Origin: Macrostomum lignano
Taxonomy: Eukaryota
Reading direction: 5' to 3'
NCBI GenBank assembly: GCA_002269645.1
Contig: NIVC01002037.1
Coordinates: 1 to 64,000 of the forward strand
DNA length: 64,000 nucleotides
The notes under the pieces were generated by a model that saw only the letters and a list, made by a program, of their open reading frames with translations, searched no databases and had not been told where the DNA came from. This document shows, piece after piece, positions 2,810 through 44,217 of the stretch; positions within the stretch are counted from its first letter, which is position 1; each line of letters opens with the position of its first letter. The translations under genes and the position numbers were made by a program.

Positions 2810-3189
2810 GAATATAACTTACTACTCACAGTAGCAGGGACATCTTTTTCAAGAGCTTTGTCTAACTAATACTGGTATTCCGCGTAAAGTTTTTATTCTA
2901 TAATGTATTACCTGTAATGTATTTGTTTTTTGAAAAATATTCTTCCTGCAATAATGTTTAGTTAATTTGATCTGTAGAAGTACGAGTATAGCTCGTACTG
3001 AAGTTTAAATATATTACCTTTTTGACCAAATTGACCTGTTAAGCTGTCGGTTGAATATTTTAATAATTTTGTGCCAAAACTATAAGTTATGAAGTTATAA
3101 AGTTACTTAGCTACTTTTTTAAACTTACCAATCTAAATTCAGGGTGCCAAATAAGGTGTTAATGAGATCTTATTCTCTTGCAAAGGTGC

Positions 3190-3630
3190 TAAATCAGGTG
3201 TCTAAGGGATCTAGTTGGCTCACCAAATCAGGTGTCTAAGGGATCTAGTTGGCTCACCAAATCAGGTGTCTAAGTGATCTAATTGGCTCACCAAATCAGG
3301 TGTCTATGGGATCTAATTGGCTCACCAAATCAGGTGTCTAAGTGATCTAATTGGCTCACCAAATCAGGTGTCTAAGTGATCTAATTGGCTCACCAAATCA
3401 GGTGTCTAAGTGATCTAATTGGCTCACCAAATCAGGTGTCTATGGGATCTAATTGGCTCACCAAATCAGGTGTCTAAGGGATCTAATTGGCTCACCAAAT
3501 CAGGTGTCTAAGGGATCTAGTTGGCTCACCAAATCAGGTGTCTAAGTGATCTAATTGGCTCACCAAATCAGGTGTCTATGGGATCTAATTGGCTGACACA
3601 TATCAAATGTCTATGGGGATCTAATTAGCT
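3190..3630. repeat. 34-bp tandem minisatellite (caccaaatcaggtgtctaagggatctagttggct)n
   Basis: Period read directly (cacc at 3221, 3255, ...). Confidence 0.95.
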
Positions 3631-4793: not shown

Positions 4794-6059
4794 ATGCCTC
4801 GCTATCTTGTGTCTCTAGCCCTGCCTCTGCTGCTTCTCAGCAGCTGCTGTTTGCACGGTGAATCTTCTTTGCCGAGCTATGTCGATTTTCTTCACGACTA
4901 CAGCCGCACGTACGACTGTCGATGTCATACGGTTTCTTCGGAATACGACTTCTTGTGCGAGATCGTTAAAAAAGGATTAACGGCAGCAAATAGCAGCATC
5001 AGCTGCTCCAACCTGCCTACAAAAGTGATTGCTCACCTAAACATCAGCTGCTCCGGTTGCAGCAACTGCGTCTCAGTGAACATGCACGAGATGACTCGAG
5101 CTCATTATGACGATGACCAGCAGATAAACTTTTATCCGCCGTCGGAGATTTCACTGAACGATTGTCGGGTCAACAGTCTCAATATTAGAATGATGCAGTT
5201 GAGAGCTGAGAATGTCAGCGTCACTGAAGGCATGGAGATAGCACAGTTCGGTGTGCCACAACATCCGGGTGTTGGTGGCTACTACACCGTGAATGTCACC
5301 TACCCGACTGATTTCAACGCGTCCGATTGTTGGCTGACTTACCTGCACATCAGACGGAGCAGTATGTGGTACTTGCCCGCCTATGTTCTACACAAATGCC
5401 AGTACATTCGTAGTGTAAGCATCGTTGAGTCGCCGATCACGTGGGTATCGATGACTGACCTACTGGCCCTTCGGTCAATCGATAGCTTGACCCTGCGCAA
5501 CTGCAGCGTGAGAACGTTTGCCGATGACGCTTTGTCGAAAGCGCTGACGGCTCTAGATGAATATCTGCAACGAGTTGGTCCGCAGCCAGTCACTGAGAAT
5601 CCTCAAGTAGCAGAGGCTATTAAACGACTGCGTAAGATGAGGCAGGACTCCGGCAAACTGAACTTGGTAATCAATCTGTACGACATGATGGACTCATTCA
5701 ACATCAGCTTTTCGCTGCTATTCGGCTACCGAACCATCAGCCTGGGCAGTGGCTTTTCTCCCTCCGACATTCCGTTCGACGTAGCTCTCAGTTACTTGAA
5801 CTTGCAATACAATGAGCTGACCGAGATCCCTTTTTCTATCAGCATGTTTGGCAATTTAAATGCAATTGACCTTAGTCACAACAAAATACGCAGGCTGTAT
5901 CACAGCTGGCTGTGCTGGTACCCTCCTATACGCGAGGAAGACAAGGCAAACTCTACCAGACACTGCTATTGGTTCAGAGGATCCAGGCAGACTCTGAAAG
6001 TGCTGAACCTTTCTTACAATCGAATCAAACAAATTGGCGAAATTCAACCTTGGCACGGG
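4794..6059 (+). CDS. Toll-like receptor-like gene A, exon 1 (signal peptide, Cys-rich N-terminal region, first LRRs)
   Basis: MPRYLVSLALPLLLLSSCC signal peptide; LRRs LSYLNLQYNELTEIP, LNAIDLSHNKIRRL; donor GGG|gtaagg at 6060, at the same position as in paralog B. Confidence 0.85.
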
Positions 6060-6112
6060 GTAAGGTGCATTGAAAAAATATTATTCATATTTTCATTCGC
6101 AGGATGGCTGTA

Positions 6113-6365
6113 GGCACGTCTTCGGCGACATTGTCCCACAACCAACGCTGAGGCCATTCTGTTCATTCCACTGACTCCACAAGCGCTCCAATACTGTACG
6201 CAGGCACTCACTCATGCACTCGCTCACACAGGGTGTGAAGTGCACAAACCCCCCCCCCCCAACCATTTTTCGTGCACACAAGCCCCAAATGTATGAGGCC
6301 GCGCGCGGAATCGAACCAGGGGTCGTTGCGCGAGAGTCAGACGGGCTTACCGCTAGTTCTCTTGA
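6113..6365 (-). mobile_element. tRNA-derived SINE-like element in intron 1 of TLR-like A
   Basis: Perfect B-box GGTTCGATTCC on minus strand (6307-6317); body similar to copies at ~10430-10600 and ~50442-50570 (gcgacattgtc.cacaacc; cactca...acagg.gtgcacagc). Confidence 0.6.
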
Positions 6366-6546
6366 TAGCCTCGTATTGGGGTTTTATAATAAAACCTGTT
6401 GACAACCCACAATGTCTTTAAACGGACATTGTTCTAAATTCTACTAGCTGTTTCTATCTTCTCGGATACCTTTAAATGACGCCGCGACAATTGTTCTAGT
6501 AAAAAAAGATACCCAGCAAGTTTAAAACCCAACTCGTCACATCTAG

Positions 6547-8851
6547 GTGGCACTGGCCGAGCTGTACCTGCAGAATAATTTTATTGTGAGCATCAATTCG
6601 GACGCATTCAGCTATTCGCTGCTGTCAAAGAGCCTGCTGGCGCTTAACCTCGACGACAACCAACTGCCCTACATTCATTTAAAGTGCTTGAGCCGCCTGG
6701 AGACTCTGAGCATTCGAAATGGTGGCCTGGCAAATATCGAGCTCAGTTCCATTCCCCAGTCGGAAAGGCTTAGGTGGATCAATCTGACCAACAATTCAAT
6801 CAGCTCGATTTCCTACAACGCTTTCAACAATCGTCCAGCCTTGGAGACAATAGATCTAAGGAACAATAGCTTAGAAAATATGTATGCATACAGCTTCAAC
6901 ATGTCGGAGCGTCCAACCTTAAGCTCTCGTGTTGTCTTGTTAATAAGCGGGCAAAAGGTTAAAACGGTCTGCAACTGCTATCACGTCTACGCTTACATAA
7001 CAGAGGAAGAGACCGACTTGGAAAGGACTAACTACCACTATCCAGCGATCCCTAAGCACGAATTGGAAATTACGTCATGCCTATTCTTCTTGAAGGACGG
7101 TGCTAACTCAACTAGAAAACTAAGTGGTGCATCGTACCGCGAGTTCTTATGTGCCTTCAGTGGCGACTATGAACAGAAATTACCGAAAAAATACTGCGAA
7201 CAACCCCCACAATCTCAGTATGCGTCGTACGCAAATGAACCAATCCCCATAACAGGCCTGACTAACAGCACGTTTGAGTGTTGGGAGACTTGCGTACCCG
7301 ACTGCAGCTGCTACCACACGGCCAAGTGGGAGTTGTCCGACCTCAACTGTACCAATATTGATGTAAACATGGTCAGCATACTGCTGCGCATCCCTGTAAA
7401 GTACATGTACTTTTCCGGAATCAGGGAGTCCGACTATTTCCACAGAATAACAAATTCCACACTGAAATGGGAAACACCAAAACTCCGCGATGCCTTAGTA
7501 GTTTTGTTTTTCAACAATAGCAACATTCGCTACATCGAAGAGAATGCGTTCGTAGATAAAACTTCGATAAAGTTTCTATACTTGGACGACAACAGGCTTG
7601 AAAAAGTACCGGCAAAAGCTTTCTGCTCACCGAATTCAGATCTGATTCGGCTAAGTCTATTGAGAAACAACCTAACTTGGATTGACCCCTATTTGTTAAA
7701 TTCTAGCTGTCTTCCAAATTTAAACGAACTCAAGATCAGCAGCAATCCGTGGCACTGTCAGTGTAACGAAATGTGGACAAGTCTTCACAAATCTCTAATT
7801 AGTGTGGCGCGCACAACGCAAGTTGTCCCAGATTTCGAAAGTATGCGTTGCCAAGTGGATCCGGCAATTATTGAAGCCTGCGAATTGAACAGATGGAATG
7901 ATGCCTGGCGACTTGATTGCCAAAAAATTCTTTTAAGCAATGGATCTCGCGACTATCCAGTGAGCGATGAGGGCGGACTCGTCAGGGTGTGCGAGCTTAT
8001 AGCGGACTCGGCAGCACAGCAGTGAAGGCAGATCGTCCTGATCATTCTGTCCTCATTATTCGGTCTCGCGCTGCTCGGTTTCGCGGTGCTCGCTGTCCGC
8101 CGTCGACACCGACTGCTGGCCGTGGTTCGAGTCCTCATCCTCCTCAAGTACCAGAGCAGTCGGCGACTGCAGCAGCAGACATCTCGGGACTCGCTGCCGT
8201 ACGACGCGATGCTGTGGGCGTCGGACAGAGACCAGGACTGTCTGGTCGACGTGCTGAACTGCGTGCGCAGCGCCTCGGGCGGAGACGAGCTCGAGCTGTG
8301 CGTTCCGGAGAGCTTCCTCTACTCGGACCTGTGCTCCTGTCCGCTCACCTACTTTGACTGTCCGGCTGAGGGAGCCAAGTTCAGCGGCAAGGTGGTGGTG
8401 GCTTTGTCCGAGAGGTTTCTCGACACCCAGTACCTGGCTCTGTGTCAGGTGATTCGAGATCTCGACAGCTTAGGTCGGAATCCGTTCAAGGACATCGTGT
8501 TTCTGCGCCTGAGCTCGCGCAGAGTGTCGCTTCAGCGCCAGAGACAGCTCGGACCTGAGGACGTGGAGGCGTTCCACACTCTGCAGAGAATCCTCGCAGG
8601 GAGCGACATCGAATACAAGTCCGTTGACTGGGAATACAGACTCATCGAGCGCATTCGGAACCGAGATCCGGCCGCCGTTCTCGTGTTTGACTCGTCTGTT
8701 CCGCCAGAGACTTCAGCGGCGGCCACGCCCGCGGTAGCTGACCGCCTTGATATTACCGTCGGGACCGCATCGGAGCCTGAAGAGCTATTAGACCTTCCAG
8801 GCGAGGGGCAGCCATTAATTGTGGACGTTGAGCAGACAATAGATTTTATAA
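6547..8851 (+). CDS. TLR-like gene A, exon 2 (LRRs, internal LRRCT/LRRNT Cys cluster, LRRs, NPWHCQC LRRCT, in-frame TGA at 8023-8025, TM helix, TIR-like domain 1)
   Basis: Acceptor ctag|GTG at 6547; ORFs 6547-8025 and 8086-8904 are in the same frame; TM IVLIILSSLFGLALLGFAVLAV follows the stop; donor A|gtaagt at 8852 (phase 1). Confidence 0.8.
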
Positions 8852-8959
8852 GTAAGTACACAAATTATTGCGGCACTGTTCTGAAATCGGCTTCAAAACG
8901 ATGAGCTCGGAATTTCCACCATTACCCATATAATCTATAATCACATAACCAATATAAAG

Positions 8960-9372
8960 GAAGCCGCACCATCCTGAGCACGATTCGGGATTGGCCGCCG
9001 TTCCACTCGGACAAAGTGCCGGAGGTCTTCATCCTGTCCGCTCCTGAGTCCGCCTCTGACTCCGAGTCCCGAGCCGACCCAGATTCGAGCTCGAACACCG
9101 TCGTCGAGCTCATCGTTCGTCGCCTCCAAGGCGTTCGGCTCGGCACCAACGACGCGGCCCTGGCTGCTCGCTGGCCTGACAACTTCGAGGGCGCCTCGCC
9201 AGCCGGCCGCATCAACAGCTTCCTGATGAAGCGAACTCGCCAGTTCGTGCTGCTGCTCAGCAACGGCCTGCTCAGCTGGCTCAGAGACGAGGCCGAGCTG
9301 CAGTGCGAGTTCCAAGCCTTCCTCGCTGCGAACTCGTTCAGACGCCGCCTGCTGGTAGTTCAGGTTGGACAG
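8960..9372 (+). CDS. TLR-like gene A, exon 3 (TIR-like domain 2)
   Basis: Phase-1 acceptor aaag|GA at 8960; EVFILS...FVLLLSNGLLSWLRDE...RRRLLVVQ is TIR-like; donor CAG|gtgaga at 9373. Confidence 0.65.
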
Positions 9373-9409
9373 GTGAGACTGAGTGAGCAGGTGTGAGTTT
9401 TGACTAGCT

Positions 9410-9855
9410 TTGCCTCACTGCTGTGTGAGTGAGACAGCTGTACCTCACTGCTGTGTGAGTGAGACAGCTCTTCCTCACTGCTGTGTGAGTGAGACAGCTG
9501 TACCTCACTGCTGTGTGAGTGAGACAGCTCTCCCTCACTGCTGTGTGAGTGAGACAGCTCTCCCTCACTGCTGTGTGAGTGAGACAGCTCTCCCTCACTG
9601 CTGTGTGAGTGAGACAGCTCTCCCTCACTGCTGTGTGAGTGAGACAGCTCTCCCTCACTGCTGTGTGAGTGAGACAGCTCTCCCTCACTGCTGTGTGAGT
9701 GAGACAGCTCTCTCTCACTGCTGTGTGAGTGAGACAGCTCTCCCTCACTGCTGTGTGAGTGAGACAGCTCTCTCTCACTGCTGTGTGAGTAAGACAGCTC
9801 TCTCTCACTGCTGTGTGAGTGAGACAGCTGTACCTCACTGCTGTGTGAGTGAGAC
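9410..9855. repeat. 30-bp minisatellite (ctgtgtgagtgagacagctctccctcactg)n in last intron of TLR-like A
   Basis: About 15 near-perfect units. Confidence 0.95.
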
Positions 9856-9884
9856 ATACAGTATCGATCTTTATTCACTCGCAG

Positions 9885-10043
9885 TTGGACAGCCGGTCGA
9901 GAGCTCGCTACCGGGCGCTGGCGAATCAGCGACTGGACGGCGGGGAGTCCGGGCCGGCGACGAACTGGTTCGACATGAGCGCCGATGACTGCGACGTCGA
10001 GGCACTGGGGCTGTGGCTGGACGGAGTGCTGTACAAAAAGTGA
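9885..10043 (+). CDS. TLR-like gene A, exon 4 (end of TIR2, LDSRSRARYRAL...WLDGVLYKK*)
   Basis: Acceptor ttcactcgcag|TTG, phase 0; the four exons total 4143 nt, a multiple of 3. Confidence 0.65.
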   Translation: MDSRSRARYRALANQRLDGGESGPATNWFDMSADDCDVEALGLWLDGVLYKK

Positions 10044-10429
10044 CTCCTGAGCATGAAACTTTGATGAAGCGCACGAAAAGATTGATAAGCAGTAAGAATG
10101 TTATCCCAGTTCGACTTGTAGAATTTAAATATTGAAAAATTAAAAGTGCAATAAATTGCAACCGAATATCACTTTTTCATCGTAAATATTGACCTTAAAA
10201 ATATACAACATGTGAATACGACTAGTTGCTTCACGTTGACTAAGAGCCATTGGCCGAAAAAGAAGAAAATGCTGGGACTTCCTGCTAAACACAGGCAAAG
10301 AGTTGCAAGGCCGCTATCACCCTGGAAGGAAACCGTTAGCCACCAGATTACTCCTTGGTCAAGCGTCCATCAGCACTGACCTACTGTACACTGGGACCTT
10401 ATTGTGTTAGTTATAGGCAGGGGCTGTGT

Positions 10430-10745
10430 GTACCCTGACGCACTTTAAGCGACATTGTCACACAACCGGCGAGAGTCATTACTGCCCATTTCGCCGATTC
10501 CCCTGAGCAGGCATACAAGCTCGCGGATGCGCACGCAGTCATACGCACAGGCACACACTCACACAGGAGTGCACAGCAGCCCTAACTTCATTTATTGTTA
10601 GGCATGTACACTTCACTATGCCTTGTGAGTTGGCCCTCAATGACGTTAATTACACGAGCAGAGCCAAGCCGAAATTCCAATTTAGCTCCAAAAATGTGAC
10701 TGCACTTGTGAATCGAGACTGGGCTGCTGGCACTGCCAGGACCTC
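10430..10745 (-). mobile_element. Diverged copy of the same SINE-like family
   Basis: Shares gcgacattgtcacacaacc and cacaggagtgcacagcagccct with the other copies. Confidence 0.45.
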
Positions 10746-11089
10746 AGCGCCAATGAAGCTGCTCAGCAAGTCCTCCCGCCATCACGCCAATCACGGAACA
10801 AAAAGATACCCTTTGAAGTGCGCCTTGCATAGTGAAAACAGGCGACAATGTCTCTTAAGCTATCATCCTGAAAGTGCACAAAGTGCATGACATTTGCAAG
10901 GGGTCTTGGATGCAACAGTCCCGGCCGTTAAATGTGTTAAATTGGGTTTCCAATTAGAAGGAGCAATGAACTGACCTACCAACTAGTGTCTCTTTGTTGT
11001 CAATATCGAAGTAATAGCCTATTAAAAGGACAATGATGCAACTGGGGATCGCACGTCCTTCTTTACTAACTCATTCAAGCAATCCCCAG

Positions 11090-11640
11090 ACTAACCTTCA
11101 AGCAATCCCCAGACTAACCTTCAACCAATCCACAGACTAACCTTCAAGCGATCCCCAGACTAACCTTCAAGCGATCCCCAGACTAACCTTCAAGCGAGCC
11201 CCAGACTAACCTTCAACCAATCCACAGACTAACCTTCAAGCGAGCCCCAGACTAACCTTCAACCAATCCCCAGACTAACCTTCAAGCGATCCCCAGACTA
11301 ACCTACAAGCGAGCCCCAGACTAACCTTCAACCAATCCACATACTAGCCTTCAAGCGATCCCCAGAATAACCTTCAAGCAATCCCAGACTAACCTTCAAG
11401 TGATCCCCAGACTAGCCTTCAAGTGATCCCTACACTAACTAACCTTCAAGCGATCCACATACTAGCCTTCAAGCGATCCCCAGAATAACCTTCAAGCAAT
11501 CCCAGACTAACCTTCAAGTGATCCCCAGACTAGCCTTCAAGTGATCCCTACACTAACTAACCTTCAAGTGATCCCCAGACTAGCCTTCAAGTGATCCCTA
11601 CACTAACCTTCAAGCGATCCACAGACTAACCTTCAAGCGA
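11090..11640. repeat. 23-bp minisatellite (cttcaagcgatccccagactaac)n
   Basis: Unit read directly. Confidence 0.95.
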
Positions 11641-14219
11641 ATCGGAGTTGATTAAACGCTCATAAGAGCAAAGCGTGACTATGTCAGGGGCAGATGAAAG
11701 CTGGTACATGTAGCTCGTAGATGCAGCTATATCAAGTATCACAAAGTCAAAGGTTAGTGTTGGCGCCAGCGTTCTTGATAGCTATAGCTTTTAAACTTCG
11801 TTTTACAACCTAAATCTGACAAATCTGACAATAAATGAATCGGTGGTATACGACATATGAAATTTTAAATTTACCGTCCTGCTGTCTTACAGTCTTTAAA
11901 CCAACTGTTTTTACGATTGCACGATGCAAACTTTGTTTTAGATTGTTTTCGCTATCAACCCGTTTGTATTGCTAAAGTCTATGCATTTGCCAGCAAGGAT
12001 AGAGCCTGTGTCAGTTCGGAATTTCAACCTTTGCCAACCGGTTTGTTGTCAGCCTTCTCTCATGACACAAAAAACTGCAGAAATTTTTCTCTCTTCGACT
12101 GGATACTATCCGAAAAATAGTTGCATACTAGATGACAAAAAGAGTTTAGAAGAAAGCATCTATGCTTCCTAACCCTCGTTTTGCAGTATGTTAATAAAAA
12201 AGTGTTCTGAAAACGCCACTAGCTGTACGATATTATGAAGCAGAATGTATGCGCACGAGCTGTACAGACACAAGAAACGGCTGAAAGTTCCTTTTTTGTT
12301 TTTTATTTAAATCTACCCTGTCTGCAGGGTACTGGCAGACTGGCCAGTACCCTAGGAAGGAAACTGGCAGGGGGTATACTCGTATTATACTGCAATTGTC
12401 TCTTAGACTGCACCGTCTATATATAATTTTCAACCATTATAGAACTAGCATAATAAGAATATGTAATTACATGTACTTGTATTCGGTTTGGCTCTTCTCC
12501 AACTGCTGCATGAACTCGATATGCATGTAAAATCTGAGATGGAGTTTAAATCTGACCTGCTAAATTCAAGCCTGATATTGTAATGGACATTATGTATCCT
12601 GTGCGACAACATTATCACAATATAAGTTAATTTAGTGCTTCAATTATGCTAGCACGACTCAGCGGGTATGATGTTGCCCCAGGCGTCAGGTCACTTGCGC
12701 GGGTGATAAGCATGCAGCCCATAATCAAACGAAGCTTGCTTTCTGGTTTACAAGGACAGGTAGTGCTGCTGGAAGAAGACTTCAGCCTCATCAGGCATTG
12801 TGGTGAAGGGCGTTGTCCGCGCAGAATAGGGAGTCTAGCTACTGCTTCAGATACTCTAACGGCCTCGTTGCTCTCTGGATGTGTGCAAATGTATTTAGTA
12901 CATGTTGAAGGCCCAAGTTCTCTCTGTGAAGTGTCTGTATTGTTCTCTGTTGATGAACATTGCAGCTTGAGATCCAGGCTCTATGTACGAGTTGGGCATA
13001 GCCAACAAGAAGATTCAAGTCCATTTAGACTTAACTTGTACATGTACGTCATTCTCGCGTGACATCACGGCATGGTTGTACATATTTTTCATCAAGTTGT
13101 ACCTCGTTAGGATTTCGTTTTGGGTTATAGGGTTAGGATATTAGAGTTAGGGTTCATAGGATAGAGTTTAGGCTAAGCACACGTAAGCTATAGTAGGGGT
13201 TTGGTTTGACAGTCAACTCGCGGCTGTCAGATGTCGCAGACTCAGTGGAGTGGTTCGATGGCTTAATTCTGTAGATGCTATTACGGTCGTACTCTTGATT
13301 CCAAAAGTAAGTAGACCACGATTTATCGTTCAATATCTGTAATGTTTATTAGCTAAATACAGCTTTTCATAGTCTTCTATTGGCTATCGAATGTAGATCT
13401 GCATCTGCGCCAGAAATATTTAATGACGCTAGCTACAAACTGTTCGATTGTTGACCTGCCCGAGACCTACTGAGCTGTTTTTGCCATCGCTCAGGCTGCA
13501 GCTATTTTTTGCGTAGAACGCTTGTTTTTTCAGGAAATTGTCTACGGAGCAGTAGGAGCAGTAATTGTGCGTTCATATTCGAGCAGGGTTTTTTTAAGAC
13601 GAGCCTGTCCTCCGCAGGCACGCAATGACTGTACAGTTCCGTGCATGCACAAGAGAGATTAATAGCTAGTGTCTGTCGTGATGTGCTCAGGTGTGCTCAG
13701 GTTTATTATATAGGCTCTCCAACGCATTGCTACGCATACTTAATGATAAATATATGCAGGAAAGCGAAAAATAAATTCTGCAATAAGTGTCTGCTATACG
13801 AGTAAGTAACTTTTTCCAGGTAAGTATGAGTATTTTGTCTGAAACTTTTGGATAGATAAGCGAACAGAAAAATATTTAATCTTGAAACATGCCTCGTTTA
13901 GTGTTTTCCTTAGCATGATGCAGCTATGCAAATTTTCAAGTCAAGAATCTTCCCGCTTGGTTATTACTTATTATCCATATGCTGACGGCTTTTGATGGTT
14001 AGTGAAACGGTTTTTGCAAGCTCAAAATTTGAAATCGTCGAAAAAGTGTTGCTAAGCTAGCTCCAGGATTCGAGACTTCGATGTTGTTTCTTCGATTTGA
14101 TGTTTCGATATTGTCAAAAATTTTGTCTGGAATGATGAGAAATTCATGTCTACCCGACAATTGACTGCCACAGATTGACTGCCAACCCTAATTTAAAAGC
14201 AAGCCAAAATTGGCACTGG

Positions 14220-14535
14220 CAGCCAAATGTCACTGACAGTCAAGTGTAACTGACAGTCAAATGTCACTGACAGTCAAATGTCACTGGCAGTCAAATGTCA
14301 CTGACAGTCAAATGTCACTGACAGTCAAATGTCACTGACAGTCAAATGTCACTGGCAGTCAAATGTCACTGACAGTCAAATGTCACTGACAGTCAAATGT
14401 CACTGACAGTCAAATGTCACTGACAGTCAAATGTCACTGACAGTCAAATGTCACTGACAGTCAAATGTCACTGACAGTCAAATGTCACTGACAGTCAAAT
14501 GTCACTGGCAGTCAAATGTCACTGACAGTCAAATG
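14220..14535. repeat. 17-bp minisatellite (gtcactgacagtcaaat)n
   Basis: Unit read directly, about 18 copies. Confidence 0.95.
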
Positions 14536-16319
14536 ACGATATTCCGTGAAATTTCCAGCTTGTGAAAGATTCCAAATTCTTGTGATTCCGAAACTTGTGT
14601 GGAGGGCAAAACATCGAGATAACTTTACTTTATGCGACTTAAGCTTGAATGAAAACATTTAATAAAAATGAAACATATAATTTTAATACTGTTAACAAGG
14701 ACCACTGTAGTAGACGGACTCGGCACTCACGAACCATGGAAAAAGTTTTGAAGGCTGATTTTTTAAGTTTGATGCTGTCTCTTCAGAAACAGATATTAAG
14801 ATGATGAGTTTGCATCCCTACTGCTCATTTGTCTGCCTGTTGCTTTCTTCTGTGATGCATTTTGAGTTCGCAGTAGGCGATTAACTATTTCAAGGTGAAC
14901 ATTAGAGCAGCAGGTACTTAGCCCCCATAACACAGTATCCATATCTGCACATACTGCCTGTACAGATGTTACAGACATACGCGTGGTAAATTTTGAAAAA
15001 TCATTAAGGTATAAGCGAATTTTAAAACAATTATGGCATTGTACGAGATGGATGTCTCGTAGTTGAAAAGTCTTACGTTTAATTAGTCTGTGGTACTGGG
15101 TAGCCATTTATTGGAAATAGCTAAGTGTACTAGAAAAAATTGACAGTAAAATGCATGAAAATGAGCAAAGCAGAAATAAAAGGCAAAATGTGAGATCAGT
15201 AGAAACTTGGTATCAAAAATGTGACATTCTGGGAAACAAAAATAAATTGACTGAACTCTGAAACAATGCAGAAAAGGTAACTGTAAGGCTATTTATAACT
15301 AATACGGTAACACAATAATCATCTTTCTAAATCTGACTAAATTGCTAAATTTGGAATTGCACACCAACAAATAGATTGGGTGGCTGTACTGAAAACGGTG
15401 TGGAATTTCATTTTACTGGTGCGGAAGCCAGTGAGGAGGGGAGTGAGGGGATGGTGGGTAGGAAGGTTGAGAGTAGTAGTGTAGAGTGAGGGGATAGTTA
15501 GGAGGGAAAATGTTACCTGACTGAGCGCATGCAACTATGTTGATGAAATGAAAACAGGTCGAACGGACCAAACTAATAAATAAATAATAATAAATGGATT
15601 AAGAGCTCAGCTTACCATCAAACTCAAATTCCTTCAATCTGTAGTGCATAGATACAGTCTACAGATACAGCAAATCTAAGTACTATGTTTATACAATTTT
15701 CACAGAATATTATAATGAGTTGTAAATATTTCCTATCACTATATATAGGCCCTAGTTGTGTTGAACTGCAATTGTTTAGGCTAGGCTATGTTTAGTTGAG
15801 AGAACTAGGACTACAATCATTACAATCAACACAACTTATTAAACCATTAATTTCCAATAAGCAATAAACTGAAGAGATACAAGTTATTTATAAAGCAAAA
15901 TTGCATTATACTTAGTGATCTAGGTCAATTAGTAGAGTATTCTAAGCTAACATCTGGCTGATTATAGTTCTGGTTTCATTCTGACAAATCAAAACATTAG
16001 TTTTGTTGGTACTAAGCATTAACATTCAATACACGATTATTACAATGCTGTGAAATATAATTAAACCCTCAAAACGCATACAAAGTTTGAATATGGCTAC
16101 ATATTATTGGCTTAGTGAAGAAAGCGAGTAGCAGAGAATTAAAAAATATGGTCGCACAAACAGACACAAAGCGTACGGAAAATCAGCCTTCAATTTTTTT
16201 CCGTGGTTCGTGAGTGCCGAGTCCTTCTACTACAGTGGTCCTTGATCAAAAACACACAAAAAATGACTGTTAACTTCTCCTTCGATTTACAATACCTTGT
16301 CATAGTACACAGCCAAGCG

Positions 16320-17630
16320 ATGCAAGCACCGACAGAAAGTCTCATACTGCTACTGGCGTGCACTCTGACGGCGCTCCTGCCGGCTGCTGCAGCTGCTCAG
16401 CCTCAGTTGGATGACGATCTGAACAAATACATTATACTGCCGAAAAACTTCAGTCTAACGCACGAGTGCTGCTGCGAGAACATGATGAACTCGCCCAGGT
16501 TTGACTACTTCTGCCAGGTGTCTGAAAAACCCTACCCGAATGCCAGCTGCATGACTGGTTGGGTAGACTGCTCCGATCTGCCGGGCAGAATCGTGTACAG
16601 CTTGACGATAAACTGTACATCTTACCCATCTGTGACTGTCAATCTGCGAGCTCTCACCGTGGCTCACAACTCAAGCAGCATCGAGAACGAAATCAGCTAT
16701 CCGCCACAACTGGTACATCTAGTGAACTGCAACGTAAACGGTTTCGAAGTTGGAATCCTTGAGCTGCCAGCTGAAAATGTCTCCCTCGATTACGGCATGG
16801 AAGTTGCACCGTTTGGAAGTCCGGATAGGCCGGGCGTTGGCGGTTACTACACTGTTAACGTCACTTATCCGCGTGAATTCCGCCAGGCTGACTGTTGGAT
16901 GGTGGAATTGAACATTGAAAATGCAAGCACTCTTTGGTATCTGCCGTCCTACCTGTGTCACAAGTGCAACTCTCTCAAGAACATCTTCATATCTAATTCT
17001 CCAATCGAATGGATCTCGATTCGCGATGTTCTCTCTTTGCATAACGTACGAAGTTTTTCTCTGACCCACAGCCGCCTAAAGTACTTTGCAAGCGACGCTC
17101 TGAGCACAGCTATCAAGCTATTAGATAGATACCTGGAAGCTGGAGTGCAAACCGGCTGCATCAATGACACTGAAGCCGCGATCAAAGCTCTAAACTCAAT
17201 ACGCAGCCGCACAGGACGGTTGAGTAGCCCCACCCAGCTATACGACACGATGGGCACCGCCAATATCGACTTCACCCTGCTATTTGGCTACAGATTGAGA
17301 AGCGCTTTCTCGGGCAATAAAACCGAGCCCGCCTGCGACATGCCTGGCAAGATGGCCCTGACCGATCTCGATTTGTCTTTCAACGCTTTGACGGATATAC
17401 CTTTCTCAATTAGCATGTTCGATCAGCTGAACCGGGTCAATCTTAGCCACAACAGAATCCGCAGCTTGTACCACGGCTGGATGTGCTGGTATCCGCCAGT
17501 TCCCGAAAACCAGAAGAACACTTCAAACCGGCACTGCTATTGGTTCAGAGCGGCTCGAGCTAGTCTGAAGGTCCTGGACTTGTCATTTAACGAAATCAAT
17601 ATGATCGGAGAGATACAGCCTTGGCACCAG
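16320..17630 (+). CDS. Toll-like receptor-like gene B, exon 1
   Basis: ATG 16320, MQAPTESLILLLACTLTALLPAAAAA signal peptide; colinear with A exon 1; donor CAG|gtgagc at 17631. Confidence 0.85.
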
Positions 17631-18508
17631 GTGAGCTAATTATTAATACTAAATTGTTGGTTATCATTATACAAAGCAATTGAAAGGGAGTCATTGAAGT
17701 TTGTGTTGGTTGTGGCCGTTTCAAGACCCCGGATTCGTAAAGTGTTGGAACACGATGACACTGATATCGCTCACTCTGCGATCCTATCGATATGAGTAAT
17801 AGTCGAACCGGTCGATAAATTGAACCTTCGCAGTAATCAGACACCGTTTTATGGCTCAATTATCTTTTCATTTAGCTCTTAGCTGACTACGTAAAAAATT
17901 GTTACAGAATGATCAAACAGATTTTTAGAAACCCATGAGTCGGGCTGTGTCATTTTAATGGTTTTGAGCAAATACTCATTTAAGTAAAAAAGATATAAGC
18001 AAAATAGTTTTTGTCTCGAAAAAAGGAAAAACGTGCTTCTCCCTACTTTTTTCGGTTAATTCTGCCGTCTAATATTTTCAAAGAAACGCAATTTCTTCCC
18101 CACACTTGGCTGGGCCGTGTCTGTCTACGGTTAAATGCTTTTTCATTTCCTTGGCCAGGCCAAAGAAATGATTGGCTAGGCCAAAGAAATGAGCTCTCAG
18201 CTGGAGAATTCGGCCCAGAGAAGGGAAGAAGCGGAAAGTAAAGCTCTAAACCAAACTGACTGCAATCGATAGCTTTTCGGGCCGGTGGACTAGAAACGCC
18301 GAGACATCTTATCCAGGTCTTTTCATGGGGCTTCCAGTTGATAAAATGAGGATTTCAGGTTAACATAAGTCTCTAGAATGAAGCTTTGCTGTGGGCTCCA
18401 ATCATATGCATGTTTAACTTGAAAAAAATCAATGAGTTAAGTGTCTCAAAGAATTTTAATATGATTTTTCAGAAATATTGTTCTCTAAAATTCACCTCTC
18501 CGCTTCAG

Positions 18509-20756
18509 GTGGCGTTGTCGTATCTCATTCTCCGCGGCAACAGAATAATGAGCGTCAACCCGGATGCGTTCGCTTACTCGCCATTAGCCACGAGCTTGCT
18601 GAATTTATATCTGGATGAAAATCTTTTGTCGTATTTTCACCTGGAATGCCTGACCCGACTGGAAGTCCTGAGTCTCGAGGGCTGTCGAATCGCGAATATC
18701 GAGCAGGAATCGCTGCCCAAGTCGAAATCGCTCAGGGAAATCAATCTCGATAGCAACAGAATTTTCGCCATCGCTCCGGGCGTTTTTGAACAGCTTGAAA
18801 AGCTTGAGTTTGTTCGGCTACATCATAACAGGCTGATGCACTTTTATGCGAACAGTTTCAAAACGCCCCCAAGATCGACCTTGGCGTCCAGAGTCATCAT
18901 ACACATTGCCAACCAGAGCGATATACCCATATGCGACTGCAGCCACGTATATAAGAAGATACTGCAGGATGAGGAGTTTGGAAATCCCCAAAAAAGCTAC
19001 GTTTATCCGAGGATTTTGCCAGAAGATATGTCCACCGAGTGCCAGTTCTTCTCCAGATTCAGCTCAACCAGAGTGGTAAAGAAACTAAGCGAATCAAATC
19101 AAAGTGAGTTTCTATGTGAATTCCAGGACAATCAAAAGCACAAGCTGCCCTGGAATTACTGTAACGAAAACGTCACTATTATGGGTCGAGAAAAGTGCTT
19201 TGTGAAGTGCATCTACGGCTGCCGGTGTTACCACGATGACGGATGGGATATTTCTGACCTGGACTGCACCCCGGGCAATTCCACAGTCACCACCGACCTG
19301 GTTAAGATGCGATTCGAATTCCCAATCAAGTACATGTTCATGGCCGGACTTAAGGACTCGGAGTTCTTCCGGCACGTCTCCAAGGGATCATTTAAATGGT
19401 TGAACGAAAGCGATTCAAATGAATTACTGTTCTTGCAGCTGAATAATAGCAACGTCAAATATGTTGAGAAAGATGCGTTCGCAAATTTTGAGAACATAGT
19501 TGTTATTTACCTGCACGACAACAATATTACCAGCATTAATCCGAGCCCTTTTATTGGAAACTGCTTTTTAAATAAAAATCTAAACCAGATCACGCTGCAT
19601 AACAACAGAATGAACTACATCGACCCGGCAATAATTAATGGAACGTGTCCTGTGGGCCTTTCAGGTGTGAGCTTAAGCGGCAATCCGTGGCACTGCTCCT
19701 GCCATGGAAAATGGATCGAGCTCCACAAAACACTCATCCAGGACTCTAGAAAAACACAAACAGTATCGGACTTCCGAAATATGTATTGCACAATTGACGC
19801 GTCTATAGTTGGTGCATGCACGGAGAACCGTGAAAATCTGCAATGGAGTGACGTATGCCAAAATGCAAATGATACGGCTAATTACCCAGTTGCCGACGAA
19901 GGCAGACTTGTCAAAGTTTGCGAGCTCATAGCGGACTCGGCAGTGCAGCAGCGAAGGCAGATCGTCCGGATGATTCTAACCTCAGTATTCGGTCTCGCGC
20001 TGCTCGGTGTCGCGATGCTCGCCGTCCGCCGTCGACACCGACTGCTGGCCGTGGTTCGAGTCCTCATCCTCCTCAAGTACCAGAGCAGTCGGCGACTGCA
20101 GCAGCAGGCATCTCGGGACTCGCTGCCGTACGACGCGATGCTGTGGGCGTCGGACAGAGACCAGGACTGTCTGGTCGACGTGCTGAACTGCGTGCGCAGC
20201 GCCTCGGGCGGAGACGAGCTCGAGCTGTGCGTTCCGGAGAGCTTCCTCTACTCGGACCTGTGCTCCTGTCCACTCACCTACTTTGACTGTCCGGCTGAGG
20301 GAGCCAAGTTCAGCGGCAAGGTGGTGGTGGCTTTGTCCGAGAGGTTTCTCGACACCCAGTACCTGGCTCTGTGTCAGGTGATTCGAGAGCTCGACAGCTT
20401 AGGTCGGAATCCGTTCAAGGACATCGTGTTTCTGCGCCTGAGCTCGCGCAGAGTGTCGCTTCAGCGCCAGAGACAGCTCGGACCTGAGGACGTGGAGGCG
20501 TTCCACACTCTGCAGAGAATCCTCGCAGAGAGCGACATCGAATACAAGTCCGTGGACTGGGAGTACAGACTCATCGAGCGCATTCGGAACCGAGATCCGG
20601 CCGCTGTTCTCCTGTTGGACCGAACAGCGGAACTGGAGTTACCGACGGCAGCTGCTGGCGGTTCGGAAAGACCAGCCGCTACAGCAACTGCGGAGCTTCC
20701 TGATCTTCCTGACGATGAGCAGGCGCTGATTGTCGACGTTGAGCAGCCAGTTACGA
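18509..20756 (+). CDS. TLR-like gene B, exon 2 (LRRs, Cys cluster, LRRCT NPWHCSC, TM, TIR-like domain 1), uninterrupted
   Basis: Acceptor cttcag|GTG; open frame through TM IVRMILTSVFGLALLGVAMLAV and YDAMLWASDRD...KVVVALSERFL; donor A|gtaagt at 20757. Confidence 0.85.
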
Positions 20757-20979
20757 GTAAGTATAACTGCCAGAGCTTTTTGTAGTCTCACTTGCCCCTT
20801 TAGTTGTTAATTTCGTTCCGAAAATTAAACTCTGATACGCAACTCTAGAGTACTACACGTAGCTCGTACATTGAGTTGAATTAGACATTTTCTTATCTCG
20901 AGAAACTCATGATGCATCTAAAGAAACAATTTTTATTTGTAAAGCTCCAAGCTAACGTTTTAATCAACATATTCAAAAG

Positions 20980-21398
20980 TTCGAGCCGCCGCCGCTCCCG
21001 GTGCGGCTGTCAGTGACTGGCCACCGTTCCACTCGGACAAAGTGCCGGAGGTCTTCATCCTGTCTGCTCCTGAGTCCGCCTCTGACTCCGAGTCCCGAGC
21101 CGACCCAGATTCGAGCTCAAACACCGTCGTCGAGCTCATCGTTCGTCGCCTCCAAGGCGTTCGGCTCGGCACCAACGACGCGGCCCTGACTGCTCGCTGG
21201 CCTGACAACTTCGAGGGCGCCTCGCCAGCCGGCCGCATCAACAGCTTCCTGATGAAGCGAACTCGCCAGTTCGTGCTGCTGCTCAGCAACGGCCTGCTCA
21301 GTTGGCTCAGAGACGAGGCCGAGCTGCAGTGCGAGTTCCAAGCCTTCCTCGCTGCGAACTCGTTCAGACGCCGCCTGCTGGTAGTTCAGGTTGGACAG
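20980..21398 (+). CDS. TLR-like gene B, exon 3 (TIR-like domain 2)
   Basis: Phase-1 acceptor caaaag|TT with upstream gctaac branch-like site; donor CAG|gtgaga at 21399. Confidence 0.65.
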
Positions 21399-21429
21399 GT
21401 GAGACTGAGTGAGCAGGTGTGAGTTTTGA

Positions 21430-21610
21430 GTAGCTTTGCCTCACTGCTGTGTGAGTGAGACAGCTCTCCCTCACTGCTGTGTGTGAGTGAGACAGCTCTC
21501 CCTCCCTGCTGTGTGAGTGAGACAGCTCTCTCTCACTGCTTTGTGAGTGAGACAGCTCTCCCTCACTGCTGTGTGAGTGAGACAGCTCTCCCTCACTGCT
21601 GTTTGAGTGA
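21430..21610. repeat. Same 30-bp minisatellite in last intron of TLR-like B (about 6 units)
   Basis: Unit matches 9410-9855. Confidence 0.9.
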
Positions 21611-21634
21611 GTATCGATCTTTATTCACTCGCAG

Positions 21635-21808
21635 GTGGACAGCCGGTCGAGAGCTCGCTACCGGGCGCTGGCGAATCAGCGATTGGACGGCGGGGAGTCC
21701 GGGTCGGCGACGAACTGGTACGACATGAGCGCCGAGGACTGCGACGTCGAGGCGCTGGGGTTGTGGCTGGACGGAGTGCTGTACAAAAAGGCTGATTTAC
21801 GTAAATAA
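21635..21808 (+). CDS. TLR-like gene B, exon 4 (ends ...WLDGVLYKKADLRK*)
   Basis: Acceptor ctcgcag|GTG; the four exons total 4152 nt, giving a 1383-aa product. Confidence 0.65.
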   Translation: MDSRSRARYRALANQRLDGGESGSATNWYDMSAEDCDVEALGLWLDGVLYKKADLRK

Positions 21809-22499: not shown

Positions 22500-24810
22500 A
22501 TGCAGCATATGAAGGAAGGTCTCAGTAGTCTATGGCTCTGAGCTGGCAGAGGTTCTCGGACCTGAAAACGTCGGAGAGGTCCGCGTTTGGGCCGAGGTAG
22601 GTGAGCCTGTCCGTAGGTGAGCCTGGGGCGTTCACAGATGAAGTGCTCCGCATTCTCAACACCGGAGGGGCAGAATGGGCATTCCTCATTGCAGATTTTC
22701 CTCTTGAGGTAACAACCGTGACCCGAGAGAGTCATGGTCACCGCCCTGATGTCCCTGCGGTTGAGTCCAAGTAGGGCCCCTCGAAGGGCGGTGGTAAGAC
22801 AGGGGACAGCCGCAGGGATTGCCGGTAGTCTGTGGCGTTAGAGGCATGCAATAGTGGGCTCAGCACCAGGCTTACGAGCTACGGTCTGCGATCCTAAACA
22901 CCTGCACCCCCTCTATTCTGGTGCAGGAATGGCAGGAGAACTCTCTCCAAGCTGACTCACAAGCCGACTCAGGGGTTCACGTTCCGCATGTGTTCAAGGC
23001 AGCTCTAGGGCTGCTGGACTGACTGGGCTCCGGCGGTGGCAACCCATCCGTGGGCTTGGCCGCTTTGGGTACGGGCTCCGCCCGGAAGTGAACCTGTGCG
23101 TATCAGGTACCTCTGGCCACGGCTCTGAGGAACAGGTATCACCCTCTGACTTTAACAGGGTATGCGGCTAGCCCGCAGGCTCCGGGGACAGCTTTTTGTA
23201 GCACCTTGCTGATGGACCTTTGGTTCGGCCTCTGGTTTCTCGAAGCCGGGCTCTTAACCGGGGAGTTTCTCGGTTGCTAGTGAGCCGGTAAGGGTAGCCC
23301 ACCCCCCGATCGCTACCTCTTGGCCTGGCTGTTGGGTTTGGGTTGCGGCGCAGCGTCTTCTCATCTCTAGCCCCCACTCGCCTTTCAGCGACTCATGGAG
23401 TATTCATTTACCTCCGCCACGTCCGAGGCTGCTGGAGCACCAAACAAGGTTGGTACCGCGGCTTAGCCGGACATTCGCAACACCGGAACCTTGGGTGACT
23501 CTTAGTCAGCCCCTACCGCCACTCAGGACAATACCGAAGTAGCTGGACAACAGGACGGCGGACCTCAGACCTCTAAAAAGAAGGCCCTTAGAATTGCTCG
23601 CTACAAAGCTTTTCTCCAGCCCAAAGTGGAGGAACGGAGGAGTGCAAAAGCCGCCCCTCCGGCCGCCTCTGAGGAGGGTGCCGGTAACTCTGCGAATCTC
23701 GGAGAGTGGAGCCGACATCCGACAAGGCCCCTCCCGTGGTGGGACCTCTGCCCGTGTGGAAACTCCCACGGCCGCGGAGAGATCCAAAGCGGGGGACGCT
23801 GGCCAACTCTCCGGAGGAGCACCTCTCCGGTGCTTTGATGCCACGCACAGGTTGATCCGAGTCGTGACAACGGGGGCCACAGACAGGGGACCAGTAAAAG
23901 AACCGGTCGAGCCAGCCTTGGCCAGGCGATCGGCCAACTTGTTGTCGGGGAGGCCCGAGTATCCCGGGATCCACCTTAGGGACACATTGTAGGAGGCGCT
24001 GAAGAGGTTAGGCTGCGCGATGCAGTCTAGGACTGTACGCAAGCAGGTGGTGGTACGTTCAAGTGGATCGTCGCTTGACTGTCTGAGTGGAGGATAATCT
24101 CCTTCCCCCGAACACGCTGATTGTACGGCTCCATGGCGCAGGAGCTGATGTCGAGAACTTCGTTCTGGAACAAAACGGTAGAGCAGGTGCCGATTTGCTG
24201 GGAGAAGGTCTTCGCGGTTCTCCCTCCAGACACGATGCAGTAGCCGTAGCCAGAGGCGGAGTTGATTTGGGACCCGTCAGTGAAGCAATGAGTTTCACGG
24301 GCTTTCCAGTTGTCTCTTGCTTCGTGACGTGGTGGAATGCTGGTTTTCAATTTGAGCGAAGGACAGAGCGAGAACGGGATTGCATCCGAGAGGGTCGACA
24401 GGCCTCCCACTGCTTTAATGTACGGCCGGAGGTTCCGCTTTCTGAAGGCGAGCAGACGGCGGGTGGTCTTCATTGCCTCCCTTCTGACAAAGAGGTCATG
24501 GGGGAAGGTCCAGGAAGGTACTCATGCCAGATAAGGGCGTCATGATAGCTCGACAAGCCCGGCCCTGCACCCTGTTAAGAGCTTCATGAACCCCTTTCAC
24601 CTTCAGGGCACTGTTCGAATGAAGCTGGCAAAAGAGATGCCGGTCTCATAATGGAAGTGTACATCCACCAGAGGCGGCGGGGTGAAGCCACAGCTATAGC
24701 GCCGAGCAAACCCAGGAAGACTTTGAGCCGGCGAAGTACTGCAAGATTTGCCCTCGCAATTTTCACCTCCATTACTTCATTGAAGCATCGGGTGGATATC
24801 AATGCATAGG
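22500..24810 (-). mobile_element. Degenerate 5'-truncated non-LTR retrotransposon (RT thumb, RNase H, C-terminal CCHC; R1/Loa/I-like), interrupted by an oppositely oriented GC-rich segment ~22870-23820
   Basis: RRLWWMYTSIMRP (thumb); FTDGSQ...FQNEV...HSDSQA and LRWIPGYSGLPDNKLADRLAK (RNase H); LNRRDIRAVTMTLSGH...CPFC..ENAEHFIC (zinc knuckle); several frameshifts. Confidence 0.85.
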
Positions 24811-27925: not shown

Positions 27926-28743
27926 GTGGGCTCAGTTAGCATTACTTTATTAACATTTCTGTATCCTCAACGAGACTTAAAAAGAAGCAGTGCTTGGACT
28001 GTGAAACCTACATTGTTTCGCATATTCGTACAAAACGCGTACATTTGTTAGGGCTTGGCCATTCCTTCTTTGGTCAGCTCGAGCGCTGCGTCAGAGCGTA
28101 AATTTATAAGCTATTTAGTTGCTGCCTAGCAGAACTCCAGCCACCAATACTATCTTCATTTTGAGAGCTCGCTATTCGAGCAAAATAGCATTTCAAATTT
28201 GGAGTTGTCTATCTATCTCGGCTCAAGAGAGTCGTTATCTAACTTGGGTAGTTATATAGCTAGAGCTATATACTACACTGCACAGATATGTGCGCTGGCA
28301 CACGCCATTTACGCTTCGGGCTATTTGCTAATTTGTAAATATGTACGCGCTTGAAATGCTCGCAATTGTTCAATAGAGAGAGGGAGAGACCAGGTGGGGA
28401 GAGACGTAGAGAAGAGATCAGCATAGTTACGCTGTATGTAATTCGCAGGGCGTTGAGGCGGGTGGACAACCATTCCGCAGCGCGATGGTTTATAATAATA
28501 AAATGCATACAAGTCATTTATAGAACCCCTGTTTTCTTTTTGAATGCATTGGGTCTGCGCCCTCTGCGTGCGGCTGTGTGCGCGATATCAGAGAGTACTC
28601 ACTCTGCAATAGCGAGAAGAGGGGACTCTTTCGTGCGGCTATTTCCACAACTATTTTCTACTGCGCATATTTACCGTATACGTTGCTTTGCTGCGTCTGT
28701 TGCGGCAAAATCTTATTAAACTGCTACGCCAGACTTGCCCTTG

Positions 28744-30079
28744 ATGTTCAAATCGTTTCGACAGCGGATGTCGCAGTCAGGCGGCTCCCGACATAGCGTC
28801 ATAGACGATGCGACCACCGAACGAAGTCGTGTCAACTCAGTGGAACTCGGCGACGGCCTGGACAGTTTGGAGGGCGACAGCGACGATCCGTTCGACTCCA
28901 GCCTGGACCGACGGACCAGGAGTCATTGGCGATCGTCCAGCGAAGAACGAAGCAAAGTTCGCCGACTTCACAGCGCCTCATCGGCTGTCACAGTTGACAG
29001 AATGGACCCGGCGACGGCCAGCAACACCGCGGCCTCAGGCCAGCCGCTCGGTTTGAAGCAGCGCGCCAAAAATTTTCTCTTCCGTCGACGATCCTTCAGC
29101 TCGCTGGACACGCACAAGATCGACGGCAGGCCGGCCCGCATCGACCCCAAGCTGGTGAGCAACTACGCCAAAAGGCATCACAGCGACGACTGCATGCTGG
29201 ACGCCGGAGATCGCGAACCGGACAGCCGGACAGGACAGAGTGGCAGCGCAACTGGCGGCGAAGGCGGGCTCGGCCTAGACAGCAGCGCGTCGGCCGGAAA
29301 GAAGAAAAGCAAATTCAGCCGGTCATTGAATTTGTTCACCTCAATGCGGCATCGATCCAGGTCGCGCGATGCGACGCATCGAAAACCTGAGAGCGGCAGA
29401 GTATCCACTAGCGGCGGCTCCTCGGACGGTGGCTGGACTGACGCCAGCGGGCCAGTCGACAGCGGCAGCGCCATCGGCAGCGAAGGCCCCGGACAAAGTG
29501 CAACTCTTGGACGGCGCGGACACCGCAACAGCGAGCAGTACATGGCGCCACCCCCTACGCAGCAAAGGCAGCAGAGGCAGCCGCAGAGGCCCTACCAGCC
29601 GCCGTATCCGCCATACCAGCAACGTCAGGTAAGCAGTGCGAGCGCCCTGGCAACTAATCTGGATGAAATTAGCGGCTTCTGTCTAGAGAGGCACCAGCTG
29701 AGAAGTCGCGTTGGCGAGGTGCTGGCGAGCTGGCCAGTCGTGCCGCTGGAGGCCGTGTCGCCTTGGCTGGTTGGCGGCAGCGGCCGCGGCGGTGGTGGCA
29801 AGAGTAAACGCCTGTCCATGGCCTTCAAAAAGGGATCGATCTTTGCATCGGCATCGCCGTCTTCCTCATCCGGCCCGTCAACACCGTCGGGCTCGTTATC
29901 GTCCGCAGTGTTCAGCGGCGGCACTGGCGGCAGCAACTTGTCAAGCGTGAGCCAGTTCTCTGGCAGCACGGCGGAGCAGCTCAACCTGCTGTGCCAGCAG
30001 TTCAATCAAGCTGTAACACTGCGCAAGAGCTACCGCGGCAAGGATCATCTTGCGGCGCGTCTTCCTCGACGGTCTAGCG
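28744..30079 (+). CDS. Uncharacterised Ser/Gly-rich low-complexity protein, exon 1
   Basis: 482-codon GC-rich ORF; first ATG 28744; donor G|gtgagc at 30080. Confidence 0.65.
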
Positions 30080-31199: not shown

Positions 31200-31555
31200 A
31201 TGCTGAACATAAAAGAGCCACCATGTCAAACAAAAGTGGCACCATTTCAAACATTAAAGGCCACAATGTCAAACATATATGACTCCATGTCTAACATTAA
31301 AGAGCCACCATGTCGAACATAAAAGAGCCACTATGTCAAACATCAACGAGTCACCATGTCAAGCGTACATACATGACTTCATTTCAGACATTAAAGTGCC
31401 ACCATGTCAAATATTAAAGAGCCACCATGTCAAGCGTATAAGTGACTCCATGTCAGACATTAAAGAGCCATCATTGCATACATTAAAGTGCCACCAGGTC
31501 AAACATTAAAAAGCCACAATGTCAAACACAAAACAGCTACCATGTCAAACATAAA
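31200..31555. repeat. Degenerate ~23-bp repeat (attaaagagccaccatgtcaaac)n
   Basis: Recurring aaagagccaccatgtcaa. Confidence 0.75.
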
Positions 31556-31559
31556 TGGG

Positions 31560-32390: not shown

Positions 32391-32513
32391 TGCTGTCCTA
32401 GGATGTTTTCTTTTTGCATTGCACTTCATTTGAGCAGTTTTTCTATTGTCTATGTGAAGACTTTTTTGGCCGTCTTTTTGATACTTGTAGAGAGCCAGAG
32501 ATTCTATCTAGAT

Positions 32514-32884: not shown

Positions 32885-32975
32885 GTGAGTCACTACTCCG
32901 CTCTCCTATCGATAAATTTCTACCGCCAGTTCTAACTAATTTACTGCCAATAATGCTGCACTATAAACTCTTCAG

Positions 32976-40722: not shown

Positions 40723-40729
40723 TAAGAGC

Positions 40730-44212: not shown

Positions 44213-44217
44213 GCTAC

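Follow-up and report, generated by a model that had tools for sequence, protein, structure and literature searches.

Repeated gene conversion as the probable source of a mosaic of near-identical and diverged segments in two tandem receptor genes of Toll-like architecture in Macrostomum lignano

The 64,000-nucleotide stretch of Macrostomum lignano DNA analysed here (positions 1 to 64,000 of the forward strand of contig NIVC01002037.1, assembly GCA_002269645.1; hereafter the window) carries two receptor genes, A and B, which lie in tandem on the plus strand with an offset of 11.9 kb. Comparison of the two genes, made within one assembly of one species, reveals a mosaic in which the DNA encoding two cytoplasmic domains (hereafter the cassette) is nearly identical, while the ectodomains are distant relatives and a linker and an intron in the middle of the cytoplasmic region cannot be aligned at all. 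This mosaic is very probably the product of repeated interlocus gene conversion between anciently duplicated tandem paralogs. The pair would thereby offer a textbook-clean case of partial concerted evolution, in which DNA exchange keeps the signalling halves alike while the sensor halves diverge.

Gene A (4794–10043, plus strand) is composed of four exons (4794–6059, 6547–8851, 8960–9372 and 9885–10043) with 1380 codons, and gene B (16320–21808, plus strand) is composed of four exons (16320–17630, 18509–20756, 20980–21398 and 21635–21808) that encode an intact protein of 1383 amino acids. The GT–AG junctions and the reading frame of both models were checked by hand and by translation, and the tblastn matches obtained with the B protein agree with the exon model of A. 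Both genes encode, in the same order, a signal peptide, a leucine-rich repeat (LRR) ectodomain, a transmembrane segment, cytoplasmic domain 1, a low-complexity linker, cytoplasmic domain 2 and a short tail. Specifically, the Pfam family LRR_8 is matched in exon 2 (E = 9e-20) and exon 1 (E = 7e-8) of B, and the PDB sequence matches are LRR proteins, including TLR9, TLR13 and TLR5. Read by eye, the ectodomains contain internal and membrane-proximal cysteine clusters; the transmembrane segment, read from the translation, comprises 22 hydrophobic residues (IVRMILTSVFGLALLGVAMLAV) followed by RRRHR.

In the alignment of A with B, there are three ungapped blocks of near-identity. Block 1, comprising the juxtamembrane segment and cytoplasmic domain 1 (A 8095–8691, B 20024–20620; offset +11929), differs at 9 of 597 nucleotides, with a synonymous divergence (dS) of 0.028; here and below, dS and the proportion of synonymous differences (pS) are Nei–Gojobori counts. 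Block 2, comprising domain 2 in exon 3 together with the first 33 nt of intron 3 (A 8989–9405, B 21015–21431; offset +12026), differs at 7 of 417 nucleotides, six of them in exon 3 and one in the intron (dS 0.053). Block 3, comprising the last 25 nt of intron 3, which are identical in A and B, and exon 4 (A 9860–10040, B 21610–21790; offset +11750), differs at 7 of 181 nucleotides (dS 0.085). The flanks of intron 3, both ends taken together, thus show a single difference in 58 nt. Between blocks 1 and 2 there is a heterologous gap (A 8692–8988, B 20621–21014), including the linker, intron 2 (8852–8959 in A) and the first 29 nt of exon 3, across which the copies are unalignable. The linkers share 30% amino-acid identity, and LIVDVEQ at the end of exon 2 is their only common motif.

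These figures agree closely with the initial annotation of this DNA, made before the present analysis, and refine its borders. It had counted about 7 substitutions between A 8095–8682 and B 20024–20611; there are exactly 7 (at 8179, 8343, 8460, 8600, 8625, 8634 and 8676), and the block extends to 8691. It had declared the linker and intron 2 unalignable from 8683 onward, and their identity is indeed that of chance, from 8692 rather than 8683. It had further described domain 2, the start of intron 3, the acceptor region and exon 4 as near-identical again, which is borne out by blocks 2 and 3, with the refinement that this near-identity starts inside exon 3.

Outside the blocks, A and B are far apart. 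Their ectodomains share 40–46% protein identity and ~50% nucleotide identity, and blastn between them returns a single 253-nt match at 68%, confirming the earlier statement that they are recognisable at the protein level only. The silent sites of the ectodomain are saturated (pS 0.77–0.81), and pS reaches 0.72 in the linker. Consistent with this, third-position identity is 37.7% in the ectodomain and 36.8% in the linker, in contrast to 96–97% in the blocks. Intron 1, intron 2 and the flanks of the two genes cannot be aligned, which, together with the saturated silent sites, indicates that the duplication of A and B is old. A recent whole-gene duplication followed by fast divergence of the ectodomains was ruled out on the same grounds: the ectodomain silent sites are saturated and intron 1 is unalignable. 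Chance is likewise excluded as the source of the mosaic, as no permutation came up to the values observed. The longest stretch without a mismatch measures 163 nt, whereas 2000 permutations yielded none above 39 nt; over third positions, the maximum chi-square of 319, with a breakpoint near 7992, compares with no more than 16 among 500 permutations.

The left edge of the homogenised region is graded, not sharp. Directly upstream of block 1 there is a transitional zone, which covers the end of the ectodomain and the transmembrane segment (A 7954–8094, B 19883–20023) and shows 84% identity and a dS of 0.39. Third-position mismatches in this zone (12 of 47) differ significantly in frequency both from those in block 1 (6 of 199; Fisher P = 5e-6) and from those in the ectodomain (538 of 864; Fisher P = 8e-7), and we interpret the zone, from its sequence, as a candidate older conversion tract. 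Along the gene, dS is therefore not uniform but passes from saturation in the ectodomain through 0.39 to the low values of the blocks. Furthermore, the block edges at 8095 and 8989 both fall within exons, block 2 beginning inside exon 3 (which starts at 8960 in A and at 20980 in B).

That three separate stretches are near-identical even at silent and intronic sites, against a saturated background, calls for recent transfer of DNA between the copies. With dS between 0.028 and 0.085 and almost unchanged intron 3 flanks, protein selection alone is insufficient, as the initial annotation had stated. No single duplication or swap could have left block edges in the interior of exons with an unalignable linker and intron 2 between the blocks; this heterologous stretch, together with tracts of significantly different age, indicates more than one event. 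The divergence of the A and B cassettes is similar in order to that of duplicated genome copies in this species (98–99% identity), indicating that the last exchanges are recent. Recurrent gene conversion or exon shuffling had both been offered at the outset; conversion stands as the best explanation, with more than one event, and exon shuffling does not, since the edges are exonic and the supposed module has an unalignable centre.

In the mechanism that we propose, repeated rounds of non-reciprocal interlocus (ectopic) gene conversion would have overwritten the 3′ halves of A and B, a break in one copy presumably being repaired with the paralog as template. At least three tracts of unequal age would be involved, namely 7954–8094 (the older), 8095–8691 and 8989–10040, the last of which would run across intron 3 and the minisatellite within it. 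The tracts would end where the copies are too unlike to pair, that is, at the ectodomain, at the fast-evolving linker with intron 2, and at the 3′ flank. An inverted fragment downstream of B, copy C, would join the exchange at exon 3, and the intron 3 minisatellite might serve as an initiation site. The short distances between the copies, with A and B in tandem and C inverted beyond them, fit this mechanism. By analogy with TLR1/TLR6, retention of a common cytoplasmic module could be favoured if A and B act through shared downstream partners; the homogenisation may also be, in part, a mechanical by-product of proximity and similarity rather than a selected design.

Recent partial duplication or exon shuffling would instead have pasted 3′ modules onto old ectodomain genes by segmental duplication. 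Copy C, a 3′ fragment that was duplicated and inverted by itself, is the kind of product that such a process leaves, and the 98–99% identity of the cassettes resembles the divergence of the duplicated genome copies of M. lignano. A pasted segment, however, would have brought the linker and intron 2 along with it, yet both are unalignable between A and B. The exonic position of the edges at 8095 and 8989 and the graded left edge also speak against pasting, and neither junction debris nor flanking duplicated sequence is visible. We therefore consider segmental duplication an unlikely source of the mosaic.

Three features were absent from the initial annotation, namely a premature stop in A, copy C and a 30-bp minisatellite in intron 3. 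The premature stop is an in-frame TGA at 8023–8025 of A (plus strand), where B has CGA, as seen by direct reading of the sequence and in translation. It is the sole stop within the 1380 codons of A and is positioned between the ectodomain and the transmembrane segment. Gene A as assembled would accordingly be either truncated, yielding a secreted ectodomain only, or a very recent pseudogene, and its cassette, being behind the stop, may be untranslated. A tiny intron that would excise the TGA was considered and found no support, as B and the M. lignano paralog Mlig015932 clearly use this stretch as coding sequence. Because the stop lies upstream of the cassette of A, selection on this cassette itself is not needed, and perhaps not available, to explain its identity with that of B.

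Copy C is an inverted orphan consisting of intron 2, exon 3, intron 3 and exon 4 (36132–37298, minus strand), and lies ~14 kb beyond B. Its exon 3 (36807–37190) is 97.7% identical to A and to B alike and follows the A/B consensus except in one 17-nt cluster. In contrast, its exon 4 is ~80% identical to A and B and carries a 15-nt deletion and a 1-nt frameshift, and its intron 2 is 78% identical to intron 2 of A and does not align with that of B. Since these flanks have decayed while exon 3 remains at 97.7%, selection on C is hard to invoke. In a tblastn search, the rest of the window contains no further A- or B-like upstream exons, and the DNA upstream of C is AT-rich and non-coding. A search for contigs that encode the public B model (UniRef A0A1I8HBV3) or the exon-2 and exon-3 open reading frames (ORFs) retrieved no further copy of the A/B locus. 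With two full genes only, one of them bearing a premature stop, and an orphan fragment, the earlier description of the locus as a modular route to receptor diversity is overstated.

All three copies contain in intron 3 a minisatellite with the same 30-bp unit (AGCTCTCCCTCACTGCTGTGTGAGTGAGAC, Tandem Repeats Finder), which holds a short inverted repeat, CTCACT/AGTGAG. There are 15 copies of the unit in A (9406–9856, plus strand), 5.9 copies in B (21432–21611, plus strand) and ~15 copies in C (36300–36760, minus strand).

The unequal length of these arrays bears on a technical explanation, in which reads of one paralog corrected the other during assembly or polishing and falsely homogenised the blocks. 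M. lignano assemblies are rich in repeats and include duplicated genome copies, minisatellites abound in the window, and the matter was judged on the assembled sequence, all of which leaves some room for such an artefact. The blocks, however, are not identical: they contain 23 substitutions in total, of which 15 are transitions, and all five silent changes in block 2 are third-position transitions. The minisatellite copy numbers of A and B have not been equalised (15 against 5.9). Moreover, cross-mapping of reads requires high similarity beforehand and cannot produce it from ~50% identity. In addition, A0A1I8HBV3, a UniRef entry of Macrostomum lignano, is 100% identical to a 268-amino-acid B query covering the transmembrane segment, domain 1 and the linker, although this entry may share the same assembly. 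Taken together, these observations make an artefact quite improbable.

The public model A0A1I8HBV3 differs from our model of B in its structure. It omits an internal stretch of exon 1 and ignores the exon 2 donor and continues into intron 2, with ...SKYNCQSFL as its end, and so contains neither domain 2 nor the tail. A search of all representative proteins with the transmembrane segment, domain 1 and linker of B retrieved only this protein itself, one distant M. lignano paralog (PAA67356.1, at 29% identity) and one spurious repeat protein.

The M. lignano paralog Mlig015932 (PAA67356.1 / PAA88883.1) resembles A and B in overall architecture and has both cytoplasmic domains, at 29–33% identity, and its first intron has the same position as that of A and B. 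It differs from them in being unlinked, with one gene per locus, no tandem partner and no mosaic. The gene Mlig015932g1 (locus coordinates 10001–15038) has four exons, with an intron directly after the transmembrane region and, unlike A and B, none inside the region of domain 2 and the tail. The two genome copies of the Mlig015932 locus are mostly 98–99% identical over the gene and its 3′ flank, with no step within the gene, indicating that the mosaic is specific to the A/B pair.

Comparison with Mlig015932 also informs the last alternative, in which the cassette would be held constant, with no exchange, by nucleotide-level constraint or a locally low mutation rate, for example through codon bias or an RNA or antisense function. 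In its favour, the GC content at third codon positions (GC3) of the cassette is high, and it is high in the unlinked paralog as well, suggesting compositional or codon constraint. The cassette of Mlig015932, however, retains just 29–33% protein identity to A and B, which shows that slow evolution is not inherent in this region. Constraint on the coding sequence would also leave the near-identity of the intron 3 flanks to be explained, and the homogenised sequence is kept both in A, behind a stop codon, and in C, within a decayed fragment. We regard this explanation as highly improbable.

Several points nevertheless weigh against gene conversion between A and B. The GC3 of the cassette, 0.77–0.88 against 0.55–0.61, resembles the effect of GC-biased conversion, but the unlinked paralog shows a contrast of its own, 0.80 against 0.63–0.72; as this contrast is similar, if smaller, GC3 was dropped as a specific sign of GC-biased gene conversion. 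At the exon 3 sites that differ between A and B, C alternates between A-like and B-like states, making the direction of conversion unreadable, and the sites informative among A, B and C in exon 3 give no clear mosaic and no donor direction. Finally, the evidence comes from a single genome assembly of a single species, and cross-mapping during polishing was judged from the assembled sequence alone.

The two genes are Toll-like in architecture, while their cytoplasmic domains do not match the model that defines the TIR family. Specifically, domains 1 and 2 of A and B give no match to Pfam TIR at E ≤ 10, and domain 1 of Mlig015932 reaches E = 0.12 against PF01582, with 12.6 bits, below the cut-off of 21.3. 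Sequence and profile searches of PDB for TIR with the cytoplasmic region returned chance matches only, PADLOC gave no match to the cytoplasmic domains, and the BB-loop motif RDxxPG is not present. There is, on the other hand, a weak profile–profile match: in hhalign, domain 1 aligns over 76 columns (probability 32%, P = 4.8e-4) with a profile built from the PDB-verified TIR domains of TLR2, TLR1 and MyD88; the N-terminal half of domain 1 keeps in register with it from box 1 (YDA...) as far as the 'VVxLSxxF' strand, that is, from the beta-A to the beta-C/alpha-C region. The AlphaFold model of domain 1 is useless when made from a single sequence (predicted local distance difference test, pLDDT, 36) and weak when made from a three-sequence alignment (pLDDT 54.7); a Foldseek search with the latter places the TIR domains of MAL, MyD88 and TRIF as its top three, at non-significant values (E 0.05–0.5, template-modelling scores 0.23–0.28). 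The names that UniRef assigns automatically, 'TIR domain-containing protein' and 'Protein toll', are in line with these weak signals. For domain 2, hhalign detects no resemblance to TIR (probability 0.16%) or to domain 1 (probability 0.1%), and there is no Pfam match. The TIR labels given in the initial annotation are thus weakly upheld for domain 1 and unsupported for domain 2, there called TIR2.

An HMM-based (hidden Markov model) survey reported 0 Toll-like receptors (TLRs) in M. lignano and other Platyhelminthes (PMC8609888). As this survey began from a TIR HMM, genes of the A/B type would be missed, and a cytoplasmic domain that escapes standard TIR models is probably the reason why surveys find no TLRs in Platyhelminthes. 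We offer, tentatively and as a reading that may well prove wrong, that M. lignano, and perhaps other flatworms, keep a small family of highly derived Toll-type receptors, with a degenerate TIR domain, a lineage-specific second domain and a cassette kept uniform by ongoing conversion, possibly seeded at the intronic minisatellite. Should domain 1 prove to have a TIR fold, Platyhelminthes could no longer be said without qualification to have lost TLRs completely.

The remainder of the window contains features of other kinds. It is unusually rich in repeat arrays, with further minisatellites or tandem repeats at 1–1372, 3147–3630, 11065–11640, 14208–14535, 31206–32414, 39365–40723, 43530–44218, 46686–47536, 47693–48106 and 59849–60685, and its GC skew is strongly negative across 38–44 kb. 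Between B and C there is a GC-rich segment (23506–24473, minus strand) with ORFs that give a weak RNase H match (E = 7e-4), probably a degraded retroelement. Two ORFs of 482 and 433 amino acids (28735–30183 and 32953–34254, plus strand) are of low complexity, rich in Ser, Pro and Gln, and have no Pfam match. An ORF with a ZIC-type zinc finger lies at 50813–51331 (minus strand), a fragment of a mariner/Tc1-type transposase at 57052–57594 (minus strand; Pfam Transposase_1, E = 1e-14, and HTH_32), and an exon of thiamin pyrophosphokinase at 60713–61225 (plus strand; TPK_catalytic and TPK_B1_binding).

Among known receptors, protostome-type Toll (multiple cysteine cluster) is like A and B in having a signal peptide, LRRs with cysteine clusters, a single transmembrane segment and a cytoplasmic alpha/beta domain. 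A and B differ from it in that they have neither a Pfam TIR match nor RDxxPG, and in that they possess a second conserved domain that is not TIR-like. The closest likeness in evolutionary pattern is found in the tandem mammalian genes TLR1 and TLR6, in which independent conversions have homogenised the last LRRs, the transmembrane segment and most of the TIR domain, with divergence confined to the N-terminal LRRs (Kruithof et al. 2007, PMC2077338); the vertebrate TLR1 family offers further cases, among them avian TLR1A/B and TLR2A/B (PMC3125219). As in TLR1/TLR6, A and B are tandem receptors with LRRs, a transmembrane segment and a signalling region, their C-terminal DNA is homogenised and their LRR region diverged, and repeated events are called for. 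The explanation would be alike as well, with a shared signalling or partner interface joined to diversified sensors. Independence across species was the key test in the TLR1/TLR6 study, while the A/B case is known from one species.

The pattern of gene conversion itself is thus already known, and the interest of the present pair lies in how clean the mosaic is and in the hint that a phylum reported to have no TLRs may possess derived receptors of the Toll-like kind. Such conversion also has a practical side, as it complicates assembly, read mapping and tree placement for the 3′ halves of the genes. Compared with TLR1/TLR6, the ectodomains of A and B are far more diverged, with dS saturated, and the converted region is interrupted by an unalignable linker and intron. 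One of the two genes has a premature stop, and an inverted orphan fragment takes part in addition to the tandem pair. The cassette of A and B comprises two cytoplasmic domains and introns, one of them with a minisatellite. The pair adds an invertebrate example in which the exchanged region itself includes introns, a minisatellite and an orphan fragment that acts as donor or acceptor.

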